Sequence record: NC_048173.1
Strand: one strand, 5' to 3'
DNA: 64,000 nt
A program made the position numbers and the translations under genes. Below are positions 5,029 to 19,869 of the stretch, piece by piece (position 1 is the first letter of the stretch; every line of letters begins with the position of its first letter). The notes beneath the pieces are model-generated. The model was not told the origin of the DNA. It was given only the letters and a program-made list of their open reading frames with translations, and searched no databases.

Positions 5029-5082
5029 AAAAAATAAGAGTAACTACTCTCCCTTTCGGGAGAGTAGTCTCTTTTCTTTTTT
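5028..5082. terminator. Bidirectional intrinsic terminator
   Basis: A-tract, ACTACTCTCCC-TTTC-GGGAGAGTAGT hairpin and T-tract between convergent genes. Confidence 0.85.
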
Positions 5083-5596
5083 AGACGAAACCGTCCAGCT
5101 CAGCGTTCTTCCACGCCAGTACATCTTTACCGGTATAAATGCGGAAGACGTAGCTCCCCTGCCACTTTAAATGATCGGGGCTAAAGGTCAATTTAATATC
5201 ACGGTATTCGTCCTGATTCTCATCCTGACGCAGTTCGGTACGTGCGATAGTGACTTCTTCCATTGTGACCGGATGGTTAGGAAGGGCCCGGTTCATCGTT
5301 GACAGCACCATGTCATCGCTGTCCCAGTTGTACTGGGCATCGTTAACGATACTGCTCGGCACGTCTTCCCCGTTCGGGTGAGTAAAGTTAAACCGGAAGA
5401 AGTGGTATTCTTTACTTCCTGTAAAATTAGGACTGTCTACTTTGGCAGTAATTACTAACGCGGTGTTGCGAGTATCGCCTTCGCCGGACGGGGCGTAATT
5501 CGTGGGGTTACCAAACTCAACATCAGATAAAGCTAAACCCAAGTCTGGGTTTTTGGCATTAATCATGCCAATGAACTCTTCCTGCAATGTAGCCAT
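5081..5596 (-). CDS. Small virion structural protein, family B
   Basis: GGAGG RBS. INAKNP, TRNTALVI, GSKEYHFFRF and C-terminal ELDGFV motifs are shared with 5654-6181. Confidence 0.7.
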   Translation of the reverse strand: MATLQEEFIGMINAKNPDLGLALSDVEFGNPTNYAPSGEGDTRNTALVITAKVDSPNFTGSKEYHFFRFNFTHPNGEDVPSSIVNDAQYNWDSDDMVLSTMNRALPNHPVTMEEVTIARTELRQDENQDEYRDIKLTFSPDHLKWQGSYVFRIYTGKDVLAWKNAELDGFV

Positions 5597-5653: not shown

Positions 5654-6181
5654 TTAAGCGGTAAAGCCGTCCAGTTCACCGTCAGTGGTGCTCAGGTCGG
5701 TTTTCACGATCTCTTCAGTTACCGTGTAGGTCGCGATCTGACCTTCATGGTACTTGATGTGGCCGGGGTTGATAGACACGCTGATAACTAGTGGGTCTTC
5801 ATCGGTGCCAGTACCGTCACGAGTGATAGACAGTTCAGCCAGGGTAAACGCGTCTTCCGCGCGACCTGCGGCAATCACGTCAGCGTTCAGGATAGCCAGC
5901 ACTTCTGCATCAGTATCCCAGTCAGCCAGATCTGCAGTTACCGCTTTCGGACCGACAACACCGGCAGACAGACGGATGTAGTGCAGTTCGACGTTACTGG
6001 TGAAGTGTTCACTTTCTGCTTTCGCAGTGATGGTCACTTTGGAGTCACGACCGCCAGTACCGCCATCCAGTGCGGTGGCGATGCTGAAGTCAACGTCAGC
6101 AACAGACAGTGCCTGTGCCAGACTTGGGTTTTTGGTGTTAAACAATTCTACCAGCTGCTGCTCGAAACTTTTAATGGCCAT
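5654..6181 (-). CDS. Small virion structural protein, family B (likely abundant)
   Basis: FNTKNP, GRDSKVTI, LHYIRL and C-terminal ELDGFTA motifs. Codon usage is skewed to CTG/AAC/TTC/ATC/CGT. Confidence 0.7.
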   Translation of the reverse strand: MAIKSFEQQLVELFNTKNPSLAQALSVADVDFSIATALDGGTGGRDSKVTITAKAESEHFTSNVELHYIRLSAGVVGPKAVTADLADWDTDAEVLAILNADVIAAGRAEDAFTLAELSITRDGTGTDEDPLVISVSINPGHIKYHEGQIATYTVTEEIVKTDLSTTDGELDGFTA

Positions 6182-6273: not shown

Positions 6274-6798
6274 TTACAGGTTCGGAACGATTTTATTCCA
6301 TTCGATAGGGTGTTGTTTAATCACTGTTACCACACCACGAGTCGGTGACCAGACGGTTAAGTCCGGTTGGTTACGTACATCGAAATGGAACCAACTGATA
6401 TCGGTTTCGAGGAAGTGGATGAACGGGAATTCATTCGGGTTCTGCTGAATATACGCCCGTACAGCTTGCGGGGTGTAACTAACAAACGTTAAGTCCATCG
6501 CCCCGCCGTATTTGTGCATGCTGTCAGACGCCGCATAAAGCTCCAGAGCGCGTTCTTTATAATTGCCACCCTTTGGTTGCTCTTGATTAATAAAGAACTG
6601 TAGCGTGCGTACAGAGCGCTGTGTCATGCCTTTCGCAGGCGAGTTGACAATGATAGCGCCGAATTTGTTACGTAGCTGCTGTAAGGTGAGCATCACCAAC
6701 GGGTTAATGATGTACGCAGCGTTCTTACCCCGACGTTTGATGATGTCCGGCGGCATTAACTCTTCGAGTTTAAACTGGTTGGGGTTGGGCTGAAACAT
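6274..6798 (-). CDS. Peptidase M15-type Zn peptidoglycan peptidase
   Basis: Arg in RSVRT, S-x-H-x-x-G-x-A-x-D (SMHKYGGAMD) and WFHFDVR motifs supply the His/Asp/His zinc ligands of family M15A. Confidence 0.75.
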   Translation of the reverse strand: MFQPNPNQFKLEELMPPDIIKRRGKNAAYIINPLVMLTLQQLRNKFGAIIVNSPAKGMTQRSVRTLQFFINQEQPKGGNYKERALELYAASDSMHKYGGAMDLTFVSYTPQAVRAYIQQNPNEFPFIHFLETDISWFHFDVRNQPDLTVWSPTRGVVTVIKQHPIEWNKIVPNL

Positions 6799-7462
6799 TT
6801 GACTCTCCTGCGGTAGGGATAGGGTAGGTCAGAAATGCGCGTTTCACATTTAAGTAATGCACGTGCGCCTGTTGCGTGGTTCGTACCATGGTCATGTCCT
6901 GTGGTGGAATACCCACCGTTGGGAACTCACGGACGAACTCGTAGTTGGCGTTCATGTTAAACGTGTACGCGTTCGGTTTAAAGTAAATGCATCCTTTGTT
7001 GTTGTCGATAAACGACGTCAAGCCAAAATGCTTCACTGCCAAATAAAAGGACTGACGTGTAACCCAATTTACCCCGAGCGCTTTCATGGCATACAGGAAC
7101 ATGCGGTCAGCAAAGGTCTTGTCGATGAAGACGTTCAGTTTTCCTACGCCGTCGGAATGGTAGTTACCGATAATCGGAATCTTCTGGTAGAGCAGGTCGT
7201 GCAATGCGGCAGCAGGGCCGTAGTCGCCTTCCGGTTTAAACAAAAACTGGAGCTGTGTGGGTATTGATGCTAAATCGGTTACAAACCCTTTCGGGGCAAC
7301 CAAATATAAAGGCGTGTCGGCTTTTAACCCGGTTTCCTTTAAAATGACCTCGAGACGTGTCGGGTCGTCCTCAAACAGACCAGCTAAAGTAAAACCGAAG
7401 GTGTAGTCTTTCGTTAAGATAAACCACTGCTTATCAAAACGACAATACTCAAACTTATCCAT
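6770..7462 (-). CDS. DUF1353-like protein
   Basis: APKGFVTDLASIP, AAALHDLLY and ADRMFLYAM motifs typical of DUF1353. Confidence 0.75.
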   Translation of the reverse strand: MDKFEYCRFDKQWFILTKDYTFGFTLAGLFEDDPTRLEVILKETGLKADTPLYLVAPKGFVTDLASIPTQLQFLFKPEGDYGPAAALHDLLYQKIPIIGNYHSDGVGKLNVFIDKTFADRMFLYAMKALGVNWVTRQSFYLAVKHFGLTSFIDNNKGCIYFKPNAYTFNMNANYEFVREFPTVGIPPQDMTMVRTTQQAHVHYLNVKRAFLTYPIPTAGESNVSAQPQPV

Positions 7463-7493
7463 CTTGTTATCCTTCGTTTTACGTGGGGGTCAT

Positions 7494-7528
7494 AAAAAAA
7501 GAACAAAGGTGTGCCCCGAAGGGCACAC
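7494..7528 (-). terminator. Intrinsic terminator ending the peptide/radical SAM transcript
   Basis: GTGTGCCC-TTCG-GGGCACAC followed by CTTTGTTCTTTTTTT on the minus strand. Confidence 0.85.
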
Positions 7529-7530
7529 GC

Positions 7531-8187
7531 TTACAACTCAGCGATAAACTTCTCTTTCAAACCTTTGAGCGTCGTGTAATCACTTTTCTCAGCGGCAGTA
7601 CGAGCAGTCTGTTTAAAGTCGGTCATCTTTTCATGCAGCGCATTGGTACGCGCAACAATGGCTTCGTTCAACGCTTTCAAATCATCCAGCGTGAATTCGA
7701 ATTTCGCATTGTTGGTATCGACCCAGTAACCCGGATCTTGCTCTGTCGAAAGGTAACGACTAATCGCCGCCAGCGCCTTCTCATCGGTCTGGTAAACCCG
7801 GCCATTCAGTTCGAGTGGAGCGACCACTGCTTCACTGTACGCTTGGTTCACCCACGCAATGAGTTCGGTCAGTAACGCGACACACTTCCCGTGCGTCGAG
7901 ATACGCTCCGCCTGACGTTGAGCCAAATCAATCCCCAGCACATCACTGATAAAGGTGTGTGCAGACTTGAGCGTGAACTTAATCTCCAGTGGAGACAAGC
8001 CCTGCGCTTTCAGTTGGGTTGACAGCTCATCGTCTTTCATCCCATCCAGCAACCGGTAGTGTGCCAGACGAGACAACGACGGGTTCCAACGCGAGTCACT
8101 TAAATGCCCGTCCACAAACTGGCCGTGACGGTCAATCAGTTTCCCGCTGTTGAGGAAGCGATCTTTTATTTGGTCATTACTAAGCAT
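7531..8187 (-). CDS. DUF4376-like tail-fibre assembly-associated protein
   Basis: C-terminal half LNGRVYQTDEKALAAI..WVDTNNAKFEFTLDDLKALNEAI..KQTARTA matches the DUF4376 pattern from recall. Confidence 0.65.
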   Translation of the reverse strand: MLSNDQIKDRFLNSGKLIDRHGQFVDGHLSDSRWNPSLSRLAHYRLLDGMKDDELSTQLKAQGLSPLEIKFTLKSAHTFISDVLGIDLAQRQAERISTHGKCVALLTELIAWVNQAYSEAVVAPLELNGRVYQTDEKALAAISRYLSTEQDPGYWVDTNNAKFEFTLDDLKALNEAIVARTNALHEKMTDFKQTARTAAEKSDYTTLKGLKEKFIAEL

Positions 8188-8729
8188 TCAGTTTTCCCCA
8201 GGATGCCGACGTCTTTCAGCAGACCGTAGTCGAGGAACGAATAGTCCTTCGCCAAGTCATACTGCCAAACGAGGTTAGACACGCGCGATTCCACCGGCGT
8301 TTCTTCAGCAGTGTTGAACACCCCGATATGATCCCACAGCTCAAAGTAGTTGCACTGGTCTTTATTGTCGCGCACCACTTTGATTTTGTTATTCGGGAAC
8401 GACTGCGCCAAAGCAATCAGCGAGTCAACCTGCTTGTTACGCTTTGCACGGAACAGCACAGTCAACTTGCTCGGCGGGGTATCCAGCATACGCTGCTCTA
8501 AGCCGGCGTTACGCAGTTCAGCGTTCGCCAGTGAGTTATGGCCGTTCTCCACACAGTCCAGCTCAATGTGCACGTTCAGCGAGTGACGGATAACCAGCTT
8601 TTTCACTGTGTCGGTGTAGTTCTCTGCTTTACACAGGATGCTTACATCGAACAGCTTATGCTTCGTCAGAAAGGCATCCAGCAGCGTGGTATCAAGCCGA
8701 GTAAAATTGTGAATCATCAATGACTGCAT
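8166..8729 (-). CDS. Hypothetical protein of the radical SAM locus (187 aa)
   Basis: Start moved from the ORF-track 8879 to ATG 8729, which has an AGGA upstream and less overlap with the rSAM gene. No family recognised. Confidence 0.6.
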   Translation of the reverse strand: MQSLMIHNFTRLDTTLLDAFLTKHKLFDVSILCKAENYTDTVKKLVIRHSLNVHIELDCVENGHNSLANAELRNAGLEQRMLDTPPSKLTVLFRAKRNKQVDSLIALAQSFPNNKIKVVRDNKDQCNYFELWDHIGVFNTAEETPVESRVSNLVWQYDLAKDYSFLDYGLLKDVGILGKTECLVMTK

Positions 8730-10038
8730 TAGGCTTTTCCTGTTTTGCATGAACGTGTGGTTGAACAGCCTCTGGTTTCGCGCCAGAGAGTTTCGGAAGT
8801 TTGTTTTCCTGCGAGGCTTTAACACGGCACTCGTAGCAGTTGCACGACAACGGTTTGAACTGGTCACCGTAAGTACCAAAGCGACGTTCCCACCATTGGG
8901 CAGTTAACAGCTTAGCGGTGGTCCAGCCGCACTGACGACGCTCAGAGTGATACTGCTTACGCGCATCTTCTTCGCCATCGCCATTCTCGTACGCCGCGGC
9001 TACGCAGGACGCACAGATGTGTTTGGCCGGGCAACCCAGACAGGCATCAGGATACGACTGCCATTGGGTCTGGACTTCGTTCAGCAGCTTGCCGCCGTCG
9101 GTGTTGACAATCTCGCGACCCACGAGTTTCGCAATTGCCTGACGGGTGGTGACGGTAGACATGAAGCGGTTACAACCGTAGATGTTACGGTCAAAGCCGA
9201 GACAGGTCATGTGAACCGTGGTACCACAGTGCGGTTTCAGACGTTCAGGGTCGTAACGAATCTGATCGTTATGCTGTAACATCTCACGCCATTCCGGAGC
9301 CCACATGTTATCGATGTTCATGCCGCGTGGGGTGATGTGGCCCATCTCAGCAGTCGGGTCTAAGTGCAGACCTTTACCAATCCAGTATTCCAGCACTTCA
9401 ATCATCTGGTTAGAGATGCCGAGCGCCATATCACGTGGAATGATATCTTCGAAAATCATGTTACCGTAAATGGTACCACCGCCAGACTGGTCAATCAGCG
9501 ACTTCATGGACGCCGCGTAGTGCTTCAGCGTGTCATGGGTAAAGGTCGCTTTAATCCCGAGGTCGTTGATTTTCATCGACTTCAGGTAATGATACCCTTC
9601 CAGCGCTTTCTCGTAGGAACCTTTACGAGAGGTGGTGAAGATACGGTGACGGTCGTGGGTTTCCGGCAGACCATCGATTGACACGCCGATAGACAGTTTC
9701 GGATACCAGCGCTCAATGATTGAACGGTTTAACGGCTTATCAAAAAGCGTTCCGTTCGTGGAGATGGAGAACATGTACGGGCGGTTATCACGCGCCGCTA
9801 ACATCTCTGCAGTTTCGAAGGCCGCAATCAGCAGCTTCGGTTGCAGGAACGGTTCCCCACCGATAATGTCGATAATCGCGCCGCCTACATTCGGCTTGCC
9901 GCGGTCACGGTCAAAACAGGCGTGGATGAAGTCAACCACGTCATCTACACGGTTGTTACGCGGGAACTTGCGCTCGTAGCAATAATCGCAATCGAGGTTA
10001 CACGACAAGTTCGTAACAATCTGATACGTTACGTCCAT
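8692..10038 (-). CDS. Radical SAM/SPASM peptide maturase (Cxxx-repeat target type)
   Basis: CNLDCDYC, IIGGEPFL, STNGTL and SIDG..HDRHR core. SPASM Cys set CGTT..NIYGC..CLGCPAKHICASC..C. GAGGGG RBS. Confidence 0.9.
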   Translation of the reverse strand: MDVTYQIVTNLSCNLDCDYCYERKFPRNNRVDDVVDFIHACFDRDRGKPNVGGAIIDIIGGEPFLQPKLLIAAFETAEMLAARDNRPYMFSISTNGTLFDKPLNRSIIERWYPKLSIGVSIDGLPETHDRHRIFTTSRKGSYEKALEGYHYLKSMKINDLGIKATFTHDTLKHYAASMKSLIDQSGGGTIYGNMIFEDIIPRDMALGISNQMIEVLEYWIGKGLHLDPTAEMGHITPRGMNIDNMWAPEWREMLQHNDQIRYDPERLKPHCGTTVHMTCLGFDRNIYGCNRFMSTVTTRQAIAKLVGREIVNTDGGKLLNEVQTQWQSYPDACLGCPAKHICASCVAAAYENGDGEEDARKQYHSERRQCGWTTAKLLTAQWWERRFGTYGDQFKPLSCNCYECRVKASQENKLPKLSGAKPEAVQPHVHAKQEKPNAVIDDSQFYSA

Positions 10039-10051
10039 TACAACATCCCCC

Positions 10052-10927
10052 TCAGGACTGTGGCAAATTTAGGTAGGTGTGTAGATACTTGTAAGCCTCT
10101 ACACCGATGATTTGGGCCATGGCATTACAGCCTGAGTTAACGTAGAAGTCCACGTTCTCATTGTGCTTAATGTCACCGTTTGGTTCTACCAGTTTCAGCT
10201 GACCGCAAGCGTTACAGTTGGTGTGGTCGAAGAACTTCTCCAGACGGAACACCGTGTTGATACCGTTAACGCTGTTGAGATGCTGCATCTGTTCTTCAAT
10301 ACGCTTGTAGCCGTAAATGAAGTTCAGTACGTGGTCCTGATTGAGAGCTTTGTGCATCAGTTTGTCAAACGTCAGGGTCATAGCACCCACACGTAAGTGA
10401 TGCAGAGCAGCATGCAAACGCATGGTGTCTTCAAACCAGCGCGGCTTGCTAACGTGTTCGCGGGTCAGTACACCCCACGTAACCACATTGTCCAGCGCGT
10501 GCATGACTTCAAACGCTTCGTGCGCCCCTTCTTCCACAAACGCCATCAGACTGCGCTCGCCACCTTCGAAATGGTCGATGGAGACGATGATGCGGTCAAA
10601 CGTTTTCAGGAAGTCGAGTTGCGAGAGTTTGAGTTTTCGGCCGTTGGTAAACAGCAGGTGTTTTGCGGAAGGCACTTGCTCACGTGCTTCGCCTACAAAG
10701 TCAACTAACTTCTGGTAGGCCAATAACGGTTCGCCGCCCGTCCACAGGAATTCCTCTACTTGAGGATTTTCTTTTATAATGTCCACCATTGCCTCTTTGT
10801 GTTTTGTTTTCGAAACATCACCCTTGGCCATGTGAGCTGCCCCTCCACAGAAGGAGCAGTTCAGGTTGCACTTAGACGTCAGGGCAATGTCAATCATGGT
10901 AGCAGACGACTTAGGGGTATCGTGCAT
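10052..10927 (-). CDS. Second radical SAM protein (short, Twitch-like C-terminus)
   Basis: CNLNCSFC, WTGGEPLL, FTNG and VSID motifs. C-terminal CNAC..EPNGD..C. Start uncertain (10927 or 10897; the track start 10993 overlaps the upstream gene). Confidence 0.85.
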   Translation of the reverse strand: MHDTPKSSATMIDIALTSKCNLNCSFCGGAAHMAKGDVSKTKHKEAMVDIIKENPQVEEFLWTGGEPLLAYQKLVDFVGEAREQVPSAKHLLFTNGRKLKLSQLDFLKTFDRIIVSIDHFEGGERSLMAFVEEGAHEAFEVMHALDNVVTWGVLTREHVSKPRWFEDTMRLHAALHHLRVGAMTLTFDKLMHKALNQDHVLNFIYGYKRIEEQMQHLNSVNGINTVFRLEKFFDHTNCNACGQLKLVEPNGDIKHNENVDFYVNSGCNAMAQIIGVEAYKYLHTYLNLPQS

Positions 10928-11849
10928 CAGGGTTTTTGTTCCACAGATTTTCCATGAACGCGAATAACGGGTCGGAGACACGAACGTCTTCACCCGGGAC
11001 GATCAGTTTCGGGTCATGGTACGCTTTAAGAATAGCATCCAGCACCTTGTTGCGGTCGTTCAAACGCAGCAGCTCATCCACCGTCACAGTCTGACGGGTA
11101 AAGGAACTGACGGCATTCATCTCTTCGGCCGACAGCAGACCCGCTTCATTGACTTTACCGACCAAGAAGGTCAGTACACGATGTAAGTCAGCGGTAGTGT
11201 TAGGTTGCTCACCGTACTCATACTGCAACAGATAGTTGGTCCACGGCTTACGAATGCGTTTGGTAATCTCATGCGCATCGGTAATTGCGGTCCACTTCAT
11301 ATCACGGTGGTCCCATGTAAATTTATAGGAATACGCGAGCAGGTCGGCCAGACAGTCGATGCCTAACTCTTCGTACCCTTCAACCGGATAGTAACGCTCG
11401 AGGTTGAAATAACCCTCGTCAACGGTACCTTCTTCAACCAGCGTATAATAGAACGGGAACGAAGACGGGTATTCCCAGTTCCACTGACGCTGAATCATCG
11501 GCTTCATGCCGTGTTCTTTGAACGAAGCAAACACCATCTCCAGCGGCATGGAATAGTTCAGCACCGCATCCGTGAAGTAATACTTTTCGTTGACGAGCTT
11601 ACCGACGTATTCGGTTGTGCCATCGAGGTTGTACAGAATCTTAATCCGCAAACCATCCGGCGTGGTAAACTCTTCACGCACTTCTGCGTGATTTAAAATA
11701 TCACGCGGTCGCAGACGAGGGAATTCACCAGGGTTCATGCAAATCAAACGCAGGCGGTCATTCACGTGGTCGTTTACCGCGTCGGGCAGCCCAAGGTGTA
11801 TTGGGTAGTTAAAGTTGGTACGAAACGCCAAGTGTTCATTATTCTTCAC
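10911..11849 (-). CDS. Hypothetical protein of the radical SAM locus (312 aa)
   Basis: GTG start 10 nt after the peptide stop, preceded by TAAGGAG. Aromatic/acidic composition, no family recognised. Confidence 0.8.
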   Translation of the reverse strand: MKNNEHLAFRTNFNYPIHLGLPDAVNDHVNDRLRLICMNPGEFPRLRPRDILNHAEVREEFTTPDGLRIKILYNLDGTTEYVGKLVNEKYYFTDAVLNYSMPLEMVFASFKEHGMKPMIQRQWNWEYPSSFPFYYTLVEEGTVDEGYFNLERYYPVEGYEELGIDCLADLLAYSYKFTWDHRDMKWTAITDAHEITKRIRKPWTNYLLQYEYGEQPNTTADLHRVLTFLVGKVNEAGLLSAEEMNAVSSFTRQTVTVDELLRLNDRNKVLDAILKAYHDPKLIVPGEDVRVSDPLFAFMENLWNKNPDARYP

Positions 11850-11859
11850 GGATAGCTCC

Positions 11860-12069
11860 TTACGATGGCCACGTTACCGCTTTAGCGCCACCTGATGCTG
11901 ACCAGCTGCAGCTGCCGTTACAACGGTAGGCCCCAGCCGGAATATTGTTTAAACGGTTCGCGTTATTCACCGTCCCCCGCGTGGCGATATAGTTATTCGC
12001 AGACGCGGTCGTGATGTACCCTTCGAGACGGGCGATTTGTTGCGCAACCTCGTTCAGTGAAACAGCCAT
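11860..12069 (-). CDS. Short MAVSLN-leader peptide (2 Cys; truncated-core paralog)
   Basis: TAAGGAG RBS. 49-aa leader homologous to the two long peptides, then CNGSCSWSASGGAKAVTWPS. Confidence 0.85.
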   Translation of the reverse strand: MAVSLNEVAQQIARLEGYITTASANNYIATRGTVNNANRLNNIPAGAYRCNGSCSWSASGGAKAVTWPS

Positions 12070-12078
12070 AGCGACTCC

Positions 12079-12477
12079 TTACGGTCCTGAGCAACCAGAG
12101 CATCCCGTACAAGACGACGAACAGCTACCAGAGCAGCCGCCTGAACAGCCTCCCGAACAACTTGTAGAGCACGTACCGGAACAGGTTCCCGTACAGTTAC
12201 CCGAACAACCCCCAGCACAACCACCCGTACAGTTAGACGAGCACGAACCGCCACACGTCCCTGAACAAGTGCCTGTACAACCGCCAGAACATGCAGACCC
12301 GCATGACCAGCTACAAGTGCCGCCACAATGGTAATGGTTGGCGTCTTGACCGGCTAATCGGTCGACGTTGTTTGAAGTTTTACCGCCGATGTACGCTTGA
12401 ACCCCTGCTTCTGTTTTCAGTGCAGCGGATTCAATGTTGCTCATCTGGTTCTTTACTGCATTAAGTGATACAGCCAT
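12079..12477 (-). CDS. Cxxx-repeat Cys/Gly/Ser-rich peptide (putative radical SAM substrate) 2
   Basis: TAAGGAG RBS. 50-aa leader plus 82-aa core with 21 Cys (18 consecutive Cxxx units, then CTG-CSG-CSGP). Confidence 0.9.
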   Translation of the reverse strand: MAVSLNAVKNQMSNIESAALKTEAGVQAYIGGKTSNNVDRLAGQDANHYHCGGTCSWSCGSACSGGCTGTCSGTCGGSCSSNCTGGCAGGCSGNCTGTCSGTCSTSCSGGCSGGCSGSCSSSCTGCSGCSGP

Positions 12478-12488
12478 GGTCGCTCTCC

Positions 12489-12875
12489 TTACATCGGACC
12501 GGAACAGGCAGAACAGCCCGTACAGGAACTAGAACAAGAGCCAGAGCACCCGTGACCACATCCGCCAGAGCACGATGAGGAACAAGCACTACCACAACCA
12601 CCCACGCAGGTGCCGGTACAGGTCCCAGAGCAACTGCCTGAACACGTACCAGAACAACCACCGGAACAGTTACCGGAACAACTCGAGCAACCATAGGAGC
12701 ACCCAGACGAACATGTCCAGCTACAGCTACCGTTACAGCGAATGTCCCCGGGTGACATGCCACCCAGATTGTTTGCGTTAAATGCTTTGGTTGCAACCTG
12801 ATTGTCCACAGAAGGTCCTGTGGCCAAAGACAGTCTCGCAATTCGCGCATTAACGTCATTAAGTGAAACGGCCAT
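12489..12875 (-). CDS. Cxxx-repeat Cys/Gly/Ser-rich peptide (putative radical SAM substrate) 1
   Basis: AAAGGAAG RBS. 46-aa leader plus 82-aa core with 21 Cys, ending CSGSCSSSCTGCSACSGPM. Confidence 0.9.
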   Translation of the reverse strand: MAVSLNDVNARIARLSLATGPSVDNQVATKAFNANNLGGMSPGDIRCNGSCSWTCSSGCSYGCSSCSGNCSGGCSGTCSGSCSGTCTGTCVGGCGSACSSSCSGGCGHGCSGSCSSSCTGCSACSGPM

Positions 12876-12929: not shown

Positions 12930-14129
12930 TTATCTGGTACCTGCAGCCGACTGGAGGTCGTCGCGGGTAGTGAGGCTGTTGTTAACGTGAACAGCCGCTT
13001 GCACCACGCCACCGGTGTTTTTGTTGAGGTACTGGTCGTGTGGGTTAGCTGCAGACTGGTGCGCCGCCAAGGCCGCATTCGTGTTAGCCAATGCCTGTTC
13101 CAGAGCCGCGATGCGATTTTCGAGCCCTTGGTTCGAGTTAGCCATGTTCGCAATCTGCTGTTTCAGGTTACTGATTTCCTGATTAGCGGCCGCCAGTCCC
13201 TGATTAAGGGTACCGAGCTGTTGCGAGAGCAGACCGACCTGCGTTTCCAGCACCAGAATCTCATCCATCAGCTCAGCGATTTGCAGCTGGGTCTTCTGGT
13301 AGTTCTGGTCAACGGTGTTAAGCTGGGTGTTCCACGTGCCAATTGAGCTAACCAGTGCGGCAATCTGCTGCGTTAAGTTAGTGTCGGTTGCGCCCAGTGT
13401 GCCGATATCTTGCAGGACAGCGTTAATGCTACTCTGTACTGTTTGAATCTGTGCCCGGACTTCAGCGGTGGAGTACACATCCAACTGACCACGGGTCAGG
13501 TTGTGAACGTTACCTTCGGCCGTACGGTGCTCTTCTAATGCCGACAGCATCTCTTGACGATACGCTTTAAGCATGTTTTGAATCTGCACCATTTCAGCGG
13601 AAGCGCCGATACGGATAGCATCGTTCAGCTTAGACAGCAGCGTAACAATATATTCAAAACCGAAGAAGTCACCCATGTCGCGGAAGGCAGGTGCGCCCGC
13701 AAACTCATCCGGCACGTCACGCAGTTCAGCGAAGTTAATCGTCGGGTCATCTAAGTTCAGCGTATTGATACACTGAATGATGTTGTCCACGTTCGCGGCA
13801 TACGGGCCACCGACAATCTGAGCCGATGCCGTAATGTCTGCCGGGACTGACGATTTGGTAATGACAATGGCTGTGGCAATCTCACGTCCGCCGGCCTGTT
13901 TGGTCAGGGACGGGTGGAGCAGAATCACTTCGTAGTTGGTACCCCGAACGAGTGGCTGATTAGGCGCATTCACCGGAGCCATTCGAAGCGTATCAACAAA
14001 GAACGGACCTGTCGGGAAAGCAAACGCTCGGTTAACAGTACCGGTACCGAGTTTAATCGGATGCGATACAGCATTACTGAGGTTGGTTCCGAACAGGTCC
14101 AATGGGTATTGCATTGCTACCTTACTCAT
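12930..14129 (-). CDS. Coiled-coil tail-fibre-like virion protein
   Basis: N-terminal YPLDLFGTNLSN domain is shared with the three giant fibre genes. Long heptad region. HRTAEGNVH and HQSAANPHDQYL fibre motifs. Confidence 0.7.
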   Translation of the reverse strand: MSKVAMQYPLDLFGTNLSNAVSHPIKLGTGTVNRAFAFPTGPFFVDTLRMAPVNAPNQPLVRGTNYEVILLHPSLTKQAGGREIATAIVITKSSVPADITASAQIVGGPYAANVDNIIQCINTLNLDDPTINFAELRDVPDEFAGAPAFRDMGDFFGFEYIVTLLSKLNDAIRIGASAEMVQIQNMLKAYRQEMLSALEEHRTAEGNVHNLTRGQLDVYSTAEVRAQIQTVQSSINAVLQDIGTLGATDTNLTQQIAALVSSIGTWNTQLNTVDQNYQKTQLQIAELMDEILVLETQVGLLSQQLGTLNQGLAAANQEISNLKQQIANMANSNQGLENRIAALEQALANTNAALAAHQSAANPHDQYLNKNTGGVVQAAVHVNNSLTTRDDLQSAAGTR

Positions 14130-14184: not shown

Positions 14185-17100
14185 TTACACGCTCAGGGTG
14201 GAATCATGAATCATAACATCAAGGACAGTTGCCGTTGTTGCATCAAAATAGATGTCAACGTACTTGCCGCCCGCGAATGCACGTTCTTCCGTCCAGAACA
14301 TAACCGGAGCTTTCGCCCCGCCCGATTGACGCATTGCCAGAATATAATCTTTCCCCGTAGGGACGGCGATGGTCTGGCCGCCCACTGCATTAGTACCAGT
14401 TAGCGTGGTTGGACTTGCAGGATTAGGTATCTTCACGCCCGTCATTGCAGCATTGGATACCGCGAGTTTTGTCGTACCGTCTTGCACCAGCTCGAACGCA
14501 ATATAGCACGGCGAGTTACCCGGGGCTTCATTAACAACGAAGGCCAGCGCGTTAGGCTGATTTAACAGCGCACCAGTCAGATTCAACGTAGCGTTACCCG
14601 ACAACGTTCCTTTAGAAACGCCGTTAAGGTATACATCCGCTGAATCATCTACTTGCACATTCAACACCAACGATGTTGATGTTGGTGTAAACGTGGTTTT
14701 CGTTGCCCAAGCGGTTCCGGCTGCCAGTTTACTCTCTGGGATGAGGGTAATTGCTGGTGAAGCCAGTGGTGGGCTATAGGCGCTAGCACGTGTCCCAACA
14801 TTCGGCCAAAGTTTCTCGGCATAGTTGGTCAGTAACATCCACGGCGCGGGGGACGCAGGGAAAGACAGGCGCTGGACTGTGTCGAAGTTACCGCCTAACT
14901 GGTTTGCTGTTTCCAGCGCTGCAGCAGTACCGTAAGACTTCGTTAAATCCGCACCCGGACGAGTGATGTTCCAGAATCGTGTAGCATTCTGAGACGTGGC
15001 CCCGTACCCAAAGCGACAACTGCGTGCAAAGGTCGGTGCTGCTGTCACCAAGTCCACTTCCGCGTATTTATACGTGGCTGTGTTTCTCAGCTGACTTAAC
15101 GTTAACCCTTTCTTCGCCGCAATGATGGCTCGGATATTGTCATCGCGTACACCGGTGGTCGGCAGTAGTGCATGTTCTACCGCGATATACAGCATGTTAC
15201 CGCGACGTTCAGCATACACGTGCGCATACCACTTACTCCATGCCAGCAAGTCCGTGGTATCCGCATCCAACGTGGCGATTAACTTAGATGACGCCTGACG
15301 GTAGTTCTCTTTGAGCTGAATCAGACCAGACAGGTTAACGTGCGACTCAATTGAGTTGCCGATAGCCAGACATAACGTCTTCTCGACGTTTGCCGTGGTG
15401 TCTTCCTTCTTCAGCGCAGCAAGCACTACTGCAACCCCGTCGTTGTCACCGTCGTTGGACGTGATAACCGTGTTGAACACATAGTCACCCACCAATTCAT
15501 CCGAGATAAAGCCCACGAACGTTGCGGTGTTTAACGTACATTCAACGACGTCGTCGGCTGCCACGTATTTCCATGCTGCCAGTTCGGAGTCATTCGCCGG
15601 CTGGTCTGCAGTGGAGTTGTTGTGGCTGAAACGGTACCAGCTGTTATAGATGTCTGCGAACGATGGGAAGGCAAACGAGTCTACCGTCCCCAAGTTTTCC
15701 ATGTTCGAGTACAACGTATCTGGCGCAGCCGCACTTGGCAGGTAGTTGTGTGCATAGCGGTTGTCAGCATGACTCAACAGTGCACCTACACGGCCCAGAC
15801 GTTTCACACGGCTGATTTTCGCTTCGGTAATCGCGTTGCTGGATGTTGTTGCATAACCGATATACAACCGGGAGTCAGTATCAGCAAGTTTCGTTTTCGA
15901 GACCAGATACTCCGCCGCTCCAGACGCGTTTAACTGCACATGGAAATAGAGCGTAGCATTCTGGTAGTCCGTAGGGAATAGCGTTTTGAAATCGAACGTC
16001 GCCGCAGGGACAAGGTGGTCTTCCATCTTCGCAAAGAACGGAACCGCTTGCGTGATGTACAGAATCATCCCTTCTGCGACTTGCGGGCCAAAGAGAATTG
16101 TGGGGCGACCACCGGTTTCAAACGCAATACCTTTCCCGCTGTAAACCGTCCCCCCTAGATAAACTCCGAGCATTACAAAACCAATTTTTGCGATCTCATC
16201 CGTTTCCTGAAGATACACATAATCGATTTCATTATTAGACGGGTTAAACGAAATACGCGTGCCTGTCCATGTTGTCAAATCTTGAGAGATTTTCAACAGG
16301 TAACTCAAGTCGGTACTAGAGCTACTGGTATTCACACGACATAGCGTTCTTGTCCTTAATAACCAGCCGTCGGCACGCTTAATCAAACGCATCTGACTCA
16401 TCTCTGCCAAATCATTGAGCGTGACCGCAGACACCCTGAATTTCTCTTCCTTCCACACCTCGACACCACTGATCATCGACAGAGAAATAATTCCATTGTC
16501 AAACGTCATCGGGATACGGTAGAAATAAGTGCTGTTATCAAACCCACCGGCCGTAGCGTTCGGAGTCAGAATACAAGTTTGCAGCACGCAGAGGTTTTGT
16601 CCTCCGAAGTCAAAGATACTCAGCCAAGCGATACGCAGCGTAGGATCAATAGCCAACCAGCCCGGAATTTTCGCGTCTAAGAAGTTTTCAATAGCTGACC
16701 ACTGCTCAGCACTGATAGCAACCCTCTCGTTGGTGATGACGGTGGTGCCTGCAATATTTCGATACGCACGACTTTCTGCCTTTCTAAACGAAGCACCGTT
16801 GAGATAGGATTGGCTACCGTTATAGACTTGTCCCAGGCGACAAATCGCTTCGTAGTCATTTTGCGACACGGTCTCACGATCATTAGACGGCCCCCAACCC
16901 GTATAATCCGGCACACCGTAGGTAGTGTCCGTGTCGTACGCGATGCTCATACACGACCCGGTGCTACGTTGACGAAGAAGCATTTTCTTGGCAGTGCCGC
17001 CCAAAGCCGCCATCCCGCGCATTCTAAGAATGTACGGCGAAGCGTATGGACCAAGCACATTCACACTGTTTCCAATTAAGTTGGTCCAATCGGCATTCCA

Positions 17101-19869
17101 GTGCGCGCTTTCAAACGCGTCAGTATTTGGTAAGCGGAAACGCACCAAAAAGTCTTCTGCATCTGAGTTGCCGATACCGGTGACCCTATCCCCCTGAACG
17201 AACAGGCACATAGTGTACCCGTAGAAAAGATTGTTCGAGGTTTGACCGTATTTCCCTTTCGGGAAGGTCAACCCGGTTTCATCAACACACAACGGGAAGA
17301 AATCGTCGTCGAGCGTGGCCGTTTTCGCGGAGAGATCGATAACATAAGACACCGTCCACTGAGGATCGCTATTTCGAATACCCTGCGCCTGCAACGAAGA
17401 ACGGGCATGCAAACGAACACGAATTTTATTGCCTTTTGCTGCAGCATAAATGTTTCTGCGGCTAAAGCTGATCATATTACGCGAAGTCCATTTCGCGGCC
17501 CCTTCTGGTGTGATGTACCAAAAGTTTGTCGTGTTAGGGTCAGTGGAGTTGGTACCATACGTTGAAAAACGCGCAGCATCACCCGCGGGGTACTTCCCAG
17601 TTAGCGGCACTTTGGACATCAGCAGGTCGGAAGTTTTCCCGACTAGACTTTCATCCAACGTCCAAATACAGGTATAAAAGTCTTGGGGGACCAAGTACAT
17701 TTTAAGCAGGCACACTTTCCCCTCGGTTAACACCAACCGGTCTTCATTGGTGTTAAAGTACGAAGGGGTAATTGGGTCGACTGTTCCGCCATTAAGCGCT
17801 TCCAAGGTCACGCGCGAGACACGGGTGTGTTTCGCCATGTTCATGGTACCGTCAAACATAACCAAATAGTATTTGTCATCGGTCCCTTGGAAAATACCGC
17901 ATTCATCACCAATGACAGTGACCGTTTTGAACTTCACGTTCGGGGCGATAGCTTTTAGCCCCACGGGCACATACTCTACGGTGGTTGGAATCGGATTGGA
18001 AACTGCGCCTGTTTCACTCACATCCGCTGTCCAATACAACACCATCTCGGAGCCGGCATACCCGCTCGTGGCATTACGAAGCACATAGAACTTACCGTTC
18101 TCTTCCCGACCGATGTTTGCCCGAAGTGCGGCTTCCATTTGTTGAGACGAGCCGTCGTAACGACCGGCGGTTGGGATAGGCAGGAAGCCACTGTCTCCGT
18201 AATACGTACCGCTGGCCACCCACGACGGTAACAGGTTGTTGGCTTTGTCTTCCGCCCCATCGATATCCAGCTTTAACTGATAACCGAGTTTAGAGACTGC
18301 CGCCCGTTGAGTCGTGTAGTCGATACCTGCCGCCAAATACGCCAACCCCGACAGAATAGGTGAGGCGGTTGGGACATTCTGCAAGTCTGCGGCGACGTGG
18401 GTGTGGACTTTCAGCGCCTTCGTGGTTAACTGGTCACGGAACACTTGTGTCACTGGCTTGTCAGCCGGTGCTGTGTTGTTGACCTTATCCAGACCAAACG
18501 ACAGTGCCGTCAGGTTAATGGTTTGGGTCGAACCGAAGGCTGCGTTGTTGATTTTGAAAGTCTCATCAACGTAGTTATTCAGTTTCAACAGCAGGTCGTT
18601 CACTCCCTTCTGTGACAGCGCGTAGTTCGGCGCAATAACCTCTACACTGTCTGTCAAACGGAACAGCCCTTCTACGGTATTCGTCGCAGCCGGGGTCTGA
18701 GCCGTCATGTTCAGTGGGGACTGCGTCGAGCCATTACCGCCCATCAACACCGTCGACGTGGACTTGAAGCTCGGTTGAGCATTCGAGTTCAGTGGGGCGT
18801 AAAGGTACAGGTTAATGGACTCTGGGGTAATCAAGAAAGCGCCGTTATAAATCGGACGGACATCTTTCGCCCCAGCAGCATTACCTTTGGAAGGTACGAA
18901 CAGCTCATCATAACCTGCACGGGAGGACACGCCTACCCCACGCTGGTTGTTGTCACTGTCTGCCGCCAGTTCAATGACCGCTTCTGTACCGGTCAACAGG
19001 ATTTTGCCCGCGGTGAACCGCAGGGCAGACTTCCCGTCTTGCGTGGCGTACATCAGCTCATCGTTATTGATAGCACGGAACCGTCCAAAGACTTGGCCCA
19101 TGGTATCTTCGAGCAGCCCATCCACGATACGCTGTGAGATTTTGTGCTCGACCATAATCGCCACTAACTCAGCGAGCGTCTTACTGAACGCTTTCACTGC
19201 GTTGGTTGCGGCATCCCCTGCCGCTAACGCCCCGATTTGTGCCGGGGTGTATTTGTGCTGATGAGGTGTTCTATGGTGCTGTAACAGTTTATCCGCATAC
19301 AGCTTTTGGGCTGCACGAGACAAAGCGGTTAAGGCGGCATTAATCTCAGTGTCGAGTTGACCAGCCTTCGCTTCAATCTTCAGACGGATACCATCAATCG
19401 ACTTCGCCACCTCATCACGCTGTAGCGCTTCGGCAAGCGTTGCGGGTGGGTCAATTGGGTCAATGGTAATTGGGTAGCGCATCAACGATTTCCAGTCGAT
19501 GTTGCGCGGTTCGGTCAGTTCAGGATTAACTAAGAAGATGCCAATGTCCGATTCAGGAACCGAATAAGACGAACCGAGAACCTGAGCTTTGTAGGTAATC
19601 TCGGTTTTGGTCAGTAGCATTATCCCGCCGAAAAGCTGAGCGTTTGCAGCGTGGGCACCCTCTGAGTAATACAACGCGAGGTAGTAATCAATACCTTCAA
19701 ATAACAGATTCCCCGCTGTGTCCTTAACCTCTAAGCCGTTACGAAAGAAGGGCGCCTCGGGAGGCACCACTAAATTGAAACGGTTAGGATAAGTGGACGA
19801 CTTGAGGGAACCTTCCGCGATGTTATCAGGGCTTTCGCCCGTCAAATCTTCGGGATAATGTTTTCTCAT
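14185..19869 (-). CDS. Giant tail-fibre/baseplate-fibre protein (1894 aa)
   Basis: YPEDLTG N-domain. HHRTPHQH, LDKVNNTAPADKPV and HTHVAADL fibre motifs. Beta-rich C-terminal domains. Confidence 0.75.
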   Translation of the reverse strand: MRKHYPEDLTGESPDNIAEGSLKSSTYPNRFNLVVPPEAPFFRNGLEVKDTAGNLLFEGIDYYLALYYSEGAHAANAQLFGGIMLLTKTEITYKAQVLGSSYSVPESDIGIFLVNPELTEPRNIDWKSLMRYPITIDPIDPPATLAEALQRDEVAKSIDGIRLKIEAKAGQLDTEINAALTALSRAAQKLYADKLLQHHRTPHQHKYTPAQIGALAAGDAATNAVKAFSKTLAELVAIMVEHKISQRIVDGLLEDTMGQVFGRFRAINNDELMYATQDGKSALRFTAGKILLTGTEAVIELAADSDNNQRGVGVSSRAGYDELFVPSKGNAAGAKDVRPIYNGAFLITPESINLYLYAPLNSNAQPSFKSTSTVLMGGNGSTQSPLNMTAQTPAATNTVEGLFRLTDSVEVIAPNYALSQKGVNDLLLKLNNYVDETFKINNAAFGSTQTINLTALSFGLDKVNNTAPADKPVTQVFRDQLTTKALKVHTHVAADLQNVPTASPILSGLAYLAAGIDYTTQRAAVSKLGYQLKLDIDGAEDKANNLLPSWVASGTYYGDSGFLPIPTAGRYDGSSQQMEAALRANIGREENGKFYVLRNATSGYAGSEMVLYWTADVSETGAVSNPIPTTVEYVPVGLKAIAPNVKFKTVTVIGDECGIFQGTDDKYYLVMFDGTMNMAKHTRVSRVTLEALNGGTVDPITPSYFNTNEDRLVLTEGKVCLLKMYLVPQDFYTCIWTLDESLVGKTSDLLMSKVPLTGKYPAGDAARFSTYGTNSTDPNTTNFWYITPEGAAKWTSRNMISFSRRNIYAAAKGNKIRVRLHARSSLQAQGIRNSDPQWTVSYVIDLSAKTATLDDDFFPLCVDETGLTFPKGKYGQTSNNLFYGYTMCLFVQGDRVTGIGNSDAEDFLVRFRLPNTDAFESAHWNADWTNLIGNSVNVLGPYASPYILRMRGMAALGGTAKKMLLRQRSTGSCMSIAYDTDTTYGVPDYTGWGPSNDRETVSQNDYEAICRLGQVYNGSQSYLNGASFRKAESRAYRNIAGTTVITNERVAISAEQWSAIENFLDAKIPGWLAIDPTLRIAWLSIFDFGGQNLCVLQTCILTPNATAGGFDNSTYFYRIPMTFDNGIISLSMISGVEVWKEEKFRVSAVTLNDLAEMSQMRLIKRADGWLLRTRTLCRVNTSSSSTDLSYLLKISQDLTTWTGTRISFNPSNNEIDYVYLQETDEIAKIGFVMLGVYLGGTVYSGKGIAFETGGRPTILFGPQVAEGMILYITQAVPFFAKMEDHLVPAATFDFKTLFPTDYQNATLYFHVQLNASGAAEYLVSKTKLADTDSRLYIGYATTSSNAITEAKISRVKRLGRVGALLSHADNRYAHNYLPSAAAPDTLYSNMENLGTVDSFAFPSFADIYNSWYRFSHNNSTADQPANDSELAAWKYVAADDVVECTLNTATFVGFISDELVGDYVFNTVITSNDGDNDGVAVVLAALKKEDTTANVEKTLCLAIGNSIESHVNLSGLIQLKENYRQASSKLIATLDADTTDLLAWSKWYAHVYAERRGNMLYIAVEHALLPTTGVRDDNIRAIIAAKKGLTLSQLRNTATYKYAEVDLVTAAPTFARSCRFGYGATSQNATRFWNITRPGADLTKSYGTAAALETANQLGGNFDTVQRLSFPASPAPWMLLTNYAEKLWPNVGTRASAYSPPLASPAITLIPESKLAAGTAWATKTTFTPTSTSLVLNVQVDDSADVYLNGVSKGTLSGNATLNLTGALLNQPNALAFVVNEAPGNSPCYIAFELVQDGTTKLAVSNAAMTGVKIPNPASPTTLTGTNAVGGQTIAVPTGKDYILAMRQSGGAKAPVMFWTEERAFAGGKYVDIYFDATTATVLDVMIHDSTLSV

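Follow-up and report, generated by a model that had tools for sequence, protein, structure and literature searches.

Cysteine-repeat proteins with a fibre-like N-terminal module at the tail-fibre locus of Erwinia phage Derbicus: candidate appendage subunits with proposed maturation by radical SAM enzymes

The Erwinia phage Derbicus (NC_048173), a 224-kb jumbo myovirus, carries three adjacent cysteine-repeat genes followed by two radical S-adenosylmethionine (SAM) enzyme genes, and the question raised by this locus is whether the proteins are precursors of released peptides or parts of the virus particle. We analyzed a window of 64,000 nucleotides of this genome (NC_048173.1), in which the three genes, here named P1, P2 and P3 (gp160), encode an N-terminal leader followed by C-x-x-x (CXXX) repeats in P1 and P2 and by a single repeat element in P3. 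A leader joined to a repetitive core next to a radical SAM enzyme recalls the RiPPs (peptides of ribosomal synthesis and post-translational modification); the first-pass annotation of this stretch had nevertheless proposed that the leader looks like a phage fibre segment and not like a classical RiPP leader. The reading that we favor, at a probability of roughly 55%, is that P1-P3 are subunits of a tail-fibre appendage that are cross-linked by enzymes and are not precursors of a released peptide; we infer their presence in virions, the retention of the leader, the oligomeric state, the docking partner and the chemistry of the cross-links.

The leaders of the three proteins show a common design. 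All three begin with MAVSLN as first noticed, and the motifs that had been picked out ahead of the first Cys are found at residues 33-39 of P1 (NANNLGG), 36-43 of P2 (NNVDRLAG) and 35-42 of P3 (NNANRLNN), the first Cys being residue 47, 51 and 50, respectively. The trio of two long proteins and one short is present in eight phages of five genera (Derbicus, Phobos, CR5, SPN3US, Stratton, Asesino, Caitlin and Wellington), and a tblastn search using P2 as a query matched the leader (first ~50 residues) in 62 phage records. In an alignment of 20 of the 24 leaders (four P3s with a GTG start codon were missed by the start pattern), position 1 is invariant, position 2 is nearly so and positions 3-6 show only conservative changes (M-A-[VI]-S-L-[NK]), and the hydrophobic residues of two heptads stand at positions 5, 8, 12 and 15 in all 20 sequences. 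An N-rich motif (NN-x3-L-x-G) lies ahead of the first Cys, position -2 relative to this Cys is aromatic or aliphatic, and a C-x-G-x-C-S-W element is found across the aligned leaders directly after the leader, at the start of the core. Within any one phage, the three chains have similar N-termini. An unrelated 76-kb phage contig (L012) bears a trio of its own, again two long and one short, with N-termini that are mutually similar and unlike those of Derbicus. No further open reading frame (ORF) in the window matches the leader profile.

To what are these leaders related? A profile built from the three leaders, each ending ahead of its first Cys (A1), was run over 1.84 billion representative proteins and gave 22 matches at E ≤ 1e-3, consisting of short orthologues and of proteins of 428-2970 amino acids (aa) with multiple matched stretches. 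The long matches contain little Cys and repeat in tandem, 3-16 times, a unit that corresponds to leader positions ~10-47; the best single stretch scores 15-25 bits in eleven of them, and the repeat spacing is roughly regular and depends on the protein, being ~26-45 residues in several and up to 114 in P0083. The E-values of the matches to tandem-repeat fibre proteins range from 4.8e-10 to 7e-4 (P0079, 4.8e-10; P0080, 2.1e-9; P0083, 1.3e-8; P0089, 9.3e-5). Among these proteins, P0083 matches PHROG 4492 (E = 8e-58), which is annotated “tail fiber protein”; P0089 has a Peptidase_S74 intramolecular chaperone domain (E = 3e-12) in addition to matches to several PHROGs of long tail fibres and baseplates; and P0079 has a weak C1q-like end. 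When each match was shuffled 100 times by residue, all shuffles scored below 10 bits vs 35-55 bits observed, so composition does not account for the matches. Four of the 22 matches (P0087, P0090, P0092 and P0096), in which the best single stretch is below 12 bits, were set aside as doubtful, and P0096 is an unrelated Cys-rich repeat protein. A word-indexed protein search with the leader alone found one protein, probably because such ORFs are seldom annotated. In the alignment of Cys-repeat homologues, the Derbicus motif corresponds to A-D-A-D-T-L-D-G in P0071 and N-S-E-R-L-D-G in P0003; the form N-A-D-x-L-D-G, which the first-pass annotation had described as common in trimeric tail fibres, is present in the former and has a close variant in the latter. 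Moreover, longer homologues carry a fibre-type domain of ~100 aa (phrog_5073 and phrog_8443, tail fibre) ahead of the part that corresponds to the leader. Profile similarity to fibre motifs is thus found with a Cys-free query and under shuffle control, which bears out the proposed likeness of the leader to a phage fibre segment.

It is also evident that the Cys-repeat genes keep company with fibre genes in other phages. The order of the cassette is fixed, namely Cys-repeat genes, a gene of the gp159 type with an orphan fold, and two radical SAM genes. In a T7-like metagenomic contig (L010, 6921-11336), nozzle and internal core genes and the gene of a 229-aa protein with a T7 fibre N-domain precede the fibre and Cys-repeat genes, which encode a 118-aa collagen-like fibre protein and a 206-aa Cys-repeat protein and are followed by the genes of a 238-aa protein and a 668-aa fused double radical SAM protein. 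The Cys-repeat and the collagen-like (Gly-X-Y) proteins of this locus share an N-domain (31% identity), and both match phrog_5073, a tail fibre family. In a temperate siphophage contig, the Cys-repeat and radical SAM genes end the tail module just before the integrase. The contigs L012 and L013 carry, in this order, a trio and homologues of gp159 (27% identity, 289 aa), of radical SAM enzyme A (28%) and of radical SAM enzyme B (49%). The cassette is located at fibre loci of three phage morphotypes (myo-, podo- and siphophage).

Because of the low complexity of the repeats, it may be asked whether the three genes are real. In the repeat region all six frames are open, and public records choose different frames or strands, as might be expected if P1-P3 were chance open frames in GC-rich repeat DNA. 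The three ORFs of the first-pass annotation are present at exactly the bounds given there, on the minus strand. Compared with Phobos, substitutions at codon positions 1, 2 and 3 number 20, 11 and 65 in P1, 11, 11 and 74 in P2 and 8, 7 and 37 in P3, and the codon differences, synonymous vs non-synonymous, number 55:18, 66:16 and 29:11, respectively (about 3-4 to 1). This bias toward codon position 3 is confined to these frames, which shows that they are real and refutes the view that they are an artefact; P1-P3 are genuine genes under purifying selection. The N-termini, the ribosome binding sites and the Cys register are kept across the five genera, and the three proteins match PHROG 6085 (E = 4.5e-43 for P1, 2.1e-40 for P2 and 2.4e-24 for P3), so that an origin by chance has next to no probability. 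Each gene of the trio is preceded by a Shine-Dalgarno site. Furthermore, the junctions P1-P2 (12478-12500), P2-P3 (12070-12095) and P3-gp159 (11850-11875) all read TAAGGAG followed by 6 nucleotides and the start codon, the TAA stop codon being fused to GGAG. The matching junctions suggest translational coupling and near-equimolar synthesis.

P1 and P2 are in the wrong frame, on the wrong strand or unannotated in every public genome examined, and P3 (Derbicus gp160) is the only member of the trio that has been called correctly. In RefSeq, Derbicus gp161 (12054-12326, over P2) and gp162 (12461-12859, over P1) use frames other than those of P2 and P1; Phobos gp167 and gp168 and CR5_157 are annotated on the strand opposite to the Cys-repeat ORFs; and in SPN3US, gp166 over P2 is in the wrong frame and no coding sequence is annotated over P1 or P3. 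The conflicting annotations include 4474-5295 of L002, 4852-5064 of L003 and 6074-6409 of L004. Since P1 and P2 are mis-annotated in the model phage SPN3US as well, the available proteomic data had no means of revealing these proteins, and existing virion proteomics data, if searched with corrected ORFs, can address the question directly.

Virion proteomics of SPN3US detected gp167, gp168, gp169 and gp170 and does not list gp163-gp166, and gp168-170 have been called baseplate or tail fibre candidates (PMC5694885). SPN3US gp167, a virion protein with no assignment to the head, is the orthologue of Derbicus gp163. The SPN3US annotation that was searched lacked the true Cys-repeat ORFs, and absence from the virion list is therefore uninformative for P1-P3. 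The orthologues of gp159 and of the radical SAM enzymes are likewise missing from that list, and this, together with the adjacent tail assembly chaperone gene and with cores of 25% Cys that could bind metals, would agree with a role outside the virion, in which the Cys-repeat proteins, gp159 and the radical SAM enzymes act in fibre assembly as a scaffold or chaperone or as carriers of metal or Fe-S clusters. We regard such a role as improbable: the N-terminal module and the N-domains of the homologues match structural fibre segments and not chaperones, the Cys-repeat protein of the T7-like locus is a paralogue of a collagen-like structural protein, and the presence of a dedicated relative of SPASM peptide maturases points to the Cys proteins as substrates.

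The main rival of a structural role is a classical RiPP. The leader of ~50 aa would then serve only for recognition by the radical SAM enzymes and be removed by a host protease or an unidentified one, perhaps after the GG or AG pair of the motif, and the cross-linked cores would be released at lysis as bioactive or metal-binding peptides. This seems unlikely to us, less so than a role in assembly alone, and it must be taken seriously, since both the arrangement of leader and core and the family of the enzymes are RiPP-like. P1 (20.0 bits) and P2 (23.8 bits) reach the target cutoff of TIGR04114 (20 bits), and P3 has no match to this model because it has one repeat element only; PF27846 is found in relatives. 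The nearest relatives of enzyme B are PapB and the CXXX-repeat maturases. Its best model is PapB (113.2 bits over positions 12-319 of 330, below the cutoff of 340), followed by the CXXX-repeat maturase model TIGR04115 (111.5 bits over positions 4-343 of 359, below the cutoff of 350), and by these scores enzyme B is a distant relative of TIGR04115 and not a member. The scores against other models are 40 bits for rSAM_six_Cys (SCIFF; cutoff 425), 50 bits for TIGR04463, 55 bits for QhpD (cutoff 453) and 54 bits for HxsB, so the curated thresholds of TIGR04115, PapB, SCIFF and the Hxs enzymes all lie above the scores observed. That a long common N-terminus can serve the enzyme is known from CrpA and CrpB of Methanococcus voltae, in which the common 47 N-terminal residues function in enzyme engagement (PMC13692751).

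Other features of the operon are difficult to reconcile with a classical RiPP. The only relative of enzyme B in the PDB by sequence is CteB, residues 106-265 of which align to residues 12-172 of enzyme B; nothing in enzyme B corresponds to the first ~100 CteB residues, and the enzyme thus lacks an N-terminal RiPP recognition element (RRE). Enzyme A has a CX3CX2C motif and gives its best matches to HxsC (49 bits) and BtrN; no SPASM domain was detected in it, and the HxsC and HxsB scores fall well short of the cutoffs (268 and 370). The AlphaFold2 (AF2) model of gp159, whose gene is translationally coupled to P3, is confident (pLDDT [predicted local distance difference test] 84, predicted template modeling score 0.78), with no neighbor in the PDB (best E = 0.14) and none in BFVD other than its own orthologue. 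On this model gp159 appears to be an orphan fold, and a function as an RRE or a known chaperone is unsupported, there being no structural neighbor. Over the genes between 5081 and 19869, Pfam, NCBIfam and PHROG scans (all three for gp159-gp163, the trio and both radical SAM enzymes; PHROGs alone for the flanking genes) detected neither a peptidase nor a transporter family, although a host protease could still act. No C39 peptidase or ABC gene was found, and the residue pair at the end of the leader motif lies 7-8 residues off the core, unlike a double-glycine leader. This pair could be read in 22 of the 24 sequences. It is AG in nine and GG in six, which makes 15 of 22 that would suit a RiPP leader, and FG, NN, FA, LN or NG in the rest, and it stands 7 residues ahead of the first Cys (8 in four rows with FG, FA or LN). 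It is NN in the P3 of Derbicus and of CR5, however, and conserved residues come after it. The earlier statement that no Gly-Gly stands directly before the core is thus literally correct, and a GG/AG-like pair exists 7 residues upstream in most leaders.

The cores themselves also argue against a free peptide. Those of P1 (12489-12737) and P2 (12079-12327) are composed of 25% Cys, 30% Ser, 26% Gly and 9% Thr, and successive Cys residues are spaced by 4 in 17-18 of the 20 intervals. In all eight phages P1 has exactly 21 Cys, though the sequence and the mixture of 3- and 4-residue spacing vary; P2 has 20-23 Cys, and the cores measure 78-92 aa. The fixed Cys number and the narrow range of core lengths suggest a constraint on length. 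Several genera share a conserved C-terminal tail resembling C-x-G-C-S-x-C-S-G-P. A Cys number kept so strictly, together with a conserved short third paralogue, is hard to square with a peptide that is released, as are the match of the leader to a fibre-shaft repeat, the location of the cassette at fibre loci in three morphotypes and the large fibre domains ahead of the core in homologues. An operon without a peptidase or exporter, an enzyme B without an RRE and the fibre-type N-domains of the homologues agree with the earlier view that this is not a classical RiPP leader. The first-pass annotation as a whole therefore stands in part, namely in the fibre likeness and in the non-classical nature of the leader; its suggestion that the leader may be kept as a module for trimerisation and attachment is a hypothesis. 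None of the 24 cores examined contains Asp or Glu, which excludes links of the PapB type, and Cys-Asp/Glu chemistry was rejected on this ground.

If P1-P3 are appendage subunits, each chain would retain its N-terminal module, made of a short amphipathic helix and one tail-fibre shaft repeat of ~35 residues that would end in NN-x3-L-x-G-x5-aromatic, and the CXXX rod would then start at the invariant C-x-G-x-C-S-W. The two long chains, with their matched core lengths, and the short chain would co-assemble through the N-terminal modules, and the assembled chains would dock onto gp163, a candidate proximal “stub” fibre that appears to lack a distal domain. Such co-assembly and docking fits the observations that the P1 and P2 cores match in length, that the short third chain is conserved, that the N-termini within a phage are alike and that translation is coupled. 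The SPASM enzyme B, with enzyme A and gp159, would staple the Cys-rich rod by thioether-type cross-links in the reducing cytoplasm, and the common N-terminal module may double as the recognition site of the enzymes. A more far-reaching proposal, which we put forward tentatively and at somewhat less than even odds, is that these proteins represent a widespread and overlooked class of phage receptor-binding or whisker fibres, in which a bundle of CXXX chains, here a hetero-oligomer of two long and one short, is covalently stapled by phage radical SAM enzymes. They would be the first virion structural proteins with RiPP-type maturation, the leader would act as fibre adaptor and enzyme docking site, and transfer between myo-, podo- and siphophages would involve the whole cassette.

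Were a structural role correct, radical SAM natural-product chemistry would take part in building a virus particle, with covalent stabilization in a reducing cytoplasm, where disulfides cannot form. A function would also be assigned to the uncharacterized CXXX-repeat family, and the presence of radical SAM genes at the fibre loci of SPN3US-like jumbo phages, a T7-like phage and a temperate siphophage would be explained.

Several known systems resemble the Derbicus locus in part. In the CXXX-repeat system (TIGR04114 and TIGR04115; PF27846, tSAM_targ_Cxxx_rpt), Ser/Gly/Thr-rich C-x-x-x repeats likewise adjoin a radical SAM/SPASM enzyme, and the alignment of enzyme B covers almost all of the TIGR04115 model; Derbicus differs in having a second radical SAM enzyme, an orphan-fold partner and a virion fibre operon. 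This system has been defined bioinformatically, and no paper on its chemistry was found in the literature searched. A Bacteroidota-type locus (L015, 5001-8809) encodes a CXXX-repeat peptide (P0036) with a twin-arginine (Tat)-like leader beside a radical SAM gene and dedicated TatA and TatC genes, and the cassette there adjoins integrase and P22-type portal genes. The Tat-like leader and TatA/TatC of P0036 form the layout expected of an exported product, unlike the fibre-type N-terminus in Derbicus. PapB is described as forming repeated Cys thioether links in a repetitive core (freyrasin, the ranthipeptide of PapA/PapB; PMC9413430, PMC10739248). It joins Cys to Asp or Glu (Cys-X3-Asp/Glu acceptors), however, and the phage cores have neither; in addition, the phage proteins are 2-3 times longer and lie in a structural operon. 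CrpC of M. voltae is a SPASM radical SAM enzyme that forms thioether (ranthionine) links on a large Cys-repeat protein (PMC13692751). Its two substrate paralogues, CrpA and CrpB, are comparable with P1-P3 in their common N-terminus of ~47 residues and in N-terminal domains that aid enzyme engagement (PMC13692751), whereas CrpC belongs to TIGR04463 and has an RRE, the Crp repeats are of 17-34 residues with C-x-x-Q/D, and the system is cellular and not viral.

RiPP chemistry acting on a protein that is retained has a precedent in QhpC/QhpD, in which a small protein has Cys residues cross-linked by a radical SAM/SPASM enzyme and is kept as a structural subunit (the gamma subunit of quinohemoprotein amine dehydrogenase; PMC10114670), although QhpC has few cross-links, to Asp and Glu, and is non-repetitive and non-viral. 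A further comparison is with trimeric tail-fibre shafts that bear tandem repeats, an S74 chaperone domain at the C-terminus or collagen-like Gly-X-Y repeats. The leader aligns to the repeat unit of such shafts, and where the neighboring paralogue of the T7-like locus has Gly-X-Y repeats, the Cys-repeat protein has its CXXX rod. Different from these shafts, the leader is one repeat copy and the Cys-repeat rod needs dedicated radical SAM enzymes. The Hxs system (HxsB/HxsC) also has two different radical SAM enzymes side by side, and its target is His-Xaa-Ser repeats instead of the Cys repeats of Derbicus. By analogy, the Derbicus system would work like CXXX-repeat or ranthipeptide-type maturation and most resembles the SPASM cross-linking of retained structural proteins (QhpC/QhpD, CrpA/CrpC). 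In the literature searched, no paper was found that ties phage fibres to CXXX repeats or to radical SAM enzymes.

The following points weigh against P1-P3 being appendage subunits. Their place in virions is a prediction, the SPN3US proteomics being blind to the true ORFs. A single copy of the fibre repeat reaches no more than 20-25 bits, and the significance of the leader matches comes from summed repeats. A search of the leader profile against the PDB gave only chance-level matches (best E = 0.89), that is, no solved structure is similar, and phmmer searches of the PDB with two repeat-bearing fibre matches gave nothing useful. The AF2 monomer model of P2 is poor (pLDDT 52 with a 24-sequence alignment), with a helix at residues 5-32 only. 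The leader/core layout, the TIGR04114 and PF27846 matches and a PapB-like SPASM enzyme are equally expected of a true RiPP, and genuine RiPPs with long N-terminal leaders exist. Finally, links of the PapB type are excluded by core composition.

The trio lies within a larger block (Table 1), in which the order on the minus strand is gp164, gp163, P1, P2, P3, gp159, enzyme A, enzyme B, gp156, gp155 and gp154. The region 8600-14200 matches Derbicus at 100% identity and shows 77-82% identity to the phages Phobos and CR5. The last gene of the block, gp154, encodes a tail assembly chaperone (phrog_1158, E = 6e-62), and gp155 and gp156 have no assigned function. By its gene families, the block from gp164 to the tail assembly chaperone is a fibre module, and the trio sits between gp163/gp164 and the chaperone, that is, inside a tail-fibre/baseplate module.

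Table 1. Positions in the window of the trio and of the genes around it.
Feature	Position	Strand	Description
P1	12489..12875	(-)	128-aa Cys-repeat protein; 46-aa N-terminal module and 82-aa CXXX core with 21 Cys
P1 N-terminal module, aa 1-46	12738..12875	(-)	MAVSLN; heptad residues 5/8/12/15; NANNLGG
P2	12079..12477	(-)	132-aa Cys-repeat protein; 50-aa N-terminal module and 82-aa core with 21 Cys
P2 N-terminal module, aa 1-50	12328..12477	(-)	NNVDRLAG; helix at residues 5-32 in AF2 monomer model
P3 (gp160)	11860..12069	(-)	69-aa short paralogue; N-terminal module and first C-x-G-x-C-S-W element only (20-aa tail)
gp163	12930..14129	(-)	399 aa; N-domain common to gp163 and gp164 (phrog_2163), then long coiled coil
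gp164	14185..19869	(-)	1894 aa; fibre or baseplate protein, orthologous to SPN3US gp168
gp159	10911..11849	(-)	312 aa; phrog_8030; between Cys-repeat and radical SAM genes
Radical SAM enzyme A	10052..10993	(-)	ORF of 313 aa (291 aa from annotated start 10927); CNLNCSFC motif
Radical SAM/SPASM enzyme B	8692..10038	(-)	448 aa
Downstream block	6770..8729	(-)	gp156 (8166-8729), gp155 (7531-8187), gp154 (6770-7462)

A scan for sigma-70 promoters and terminators found sites no more often than expected by chance; it is uninformative here because jumbo phages use polymerases of their own. Beyond the block, two adjacent paralogous genes (5081-5596 and 5654-6181; phrog_4862) are weakly similar to virion structural protein families, and an endolysin-like ORF at 6274-6798 adjoins this pair.

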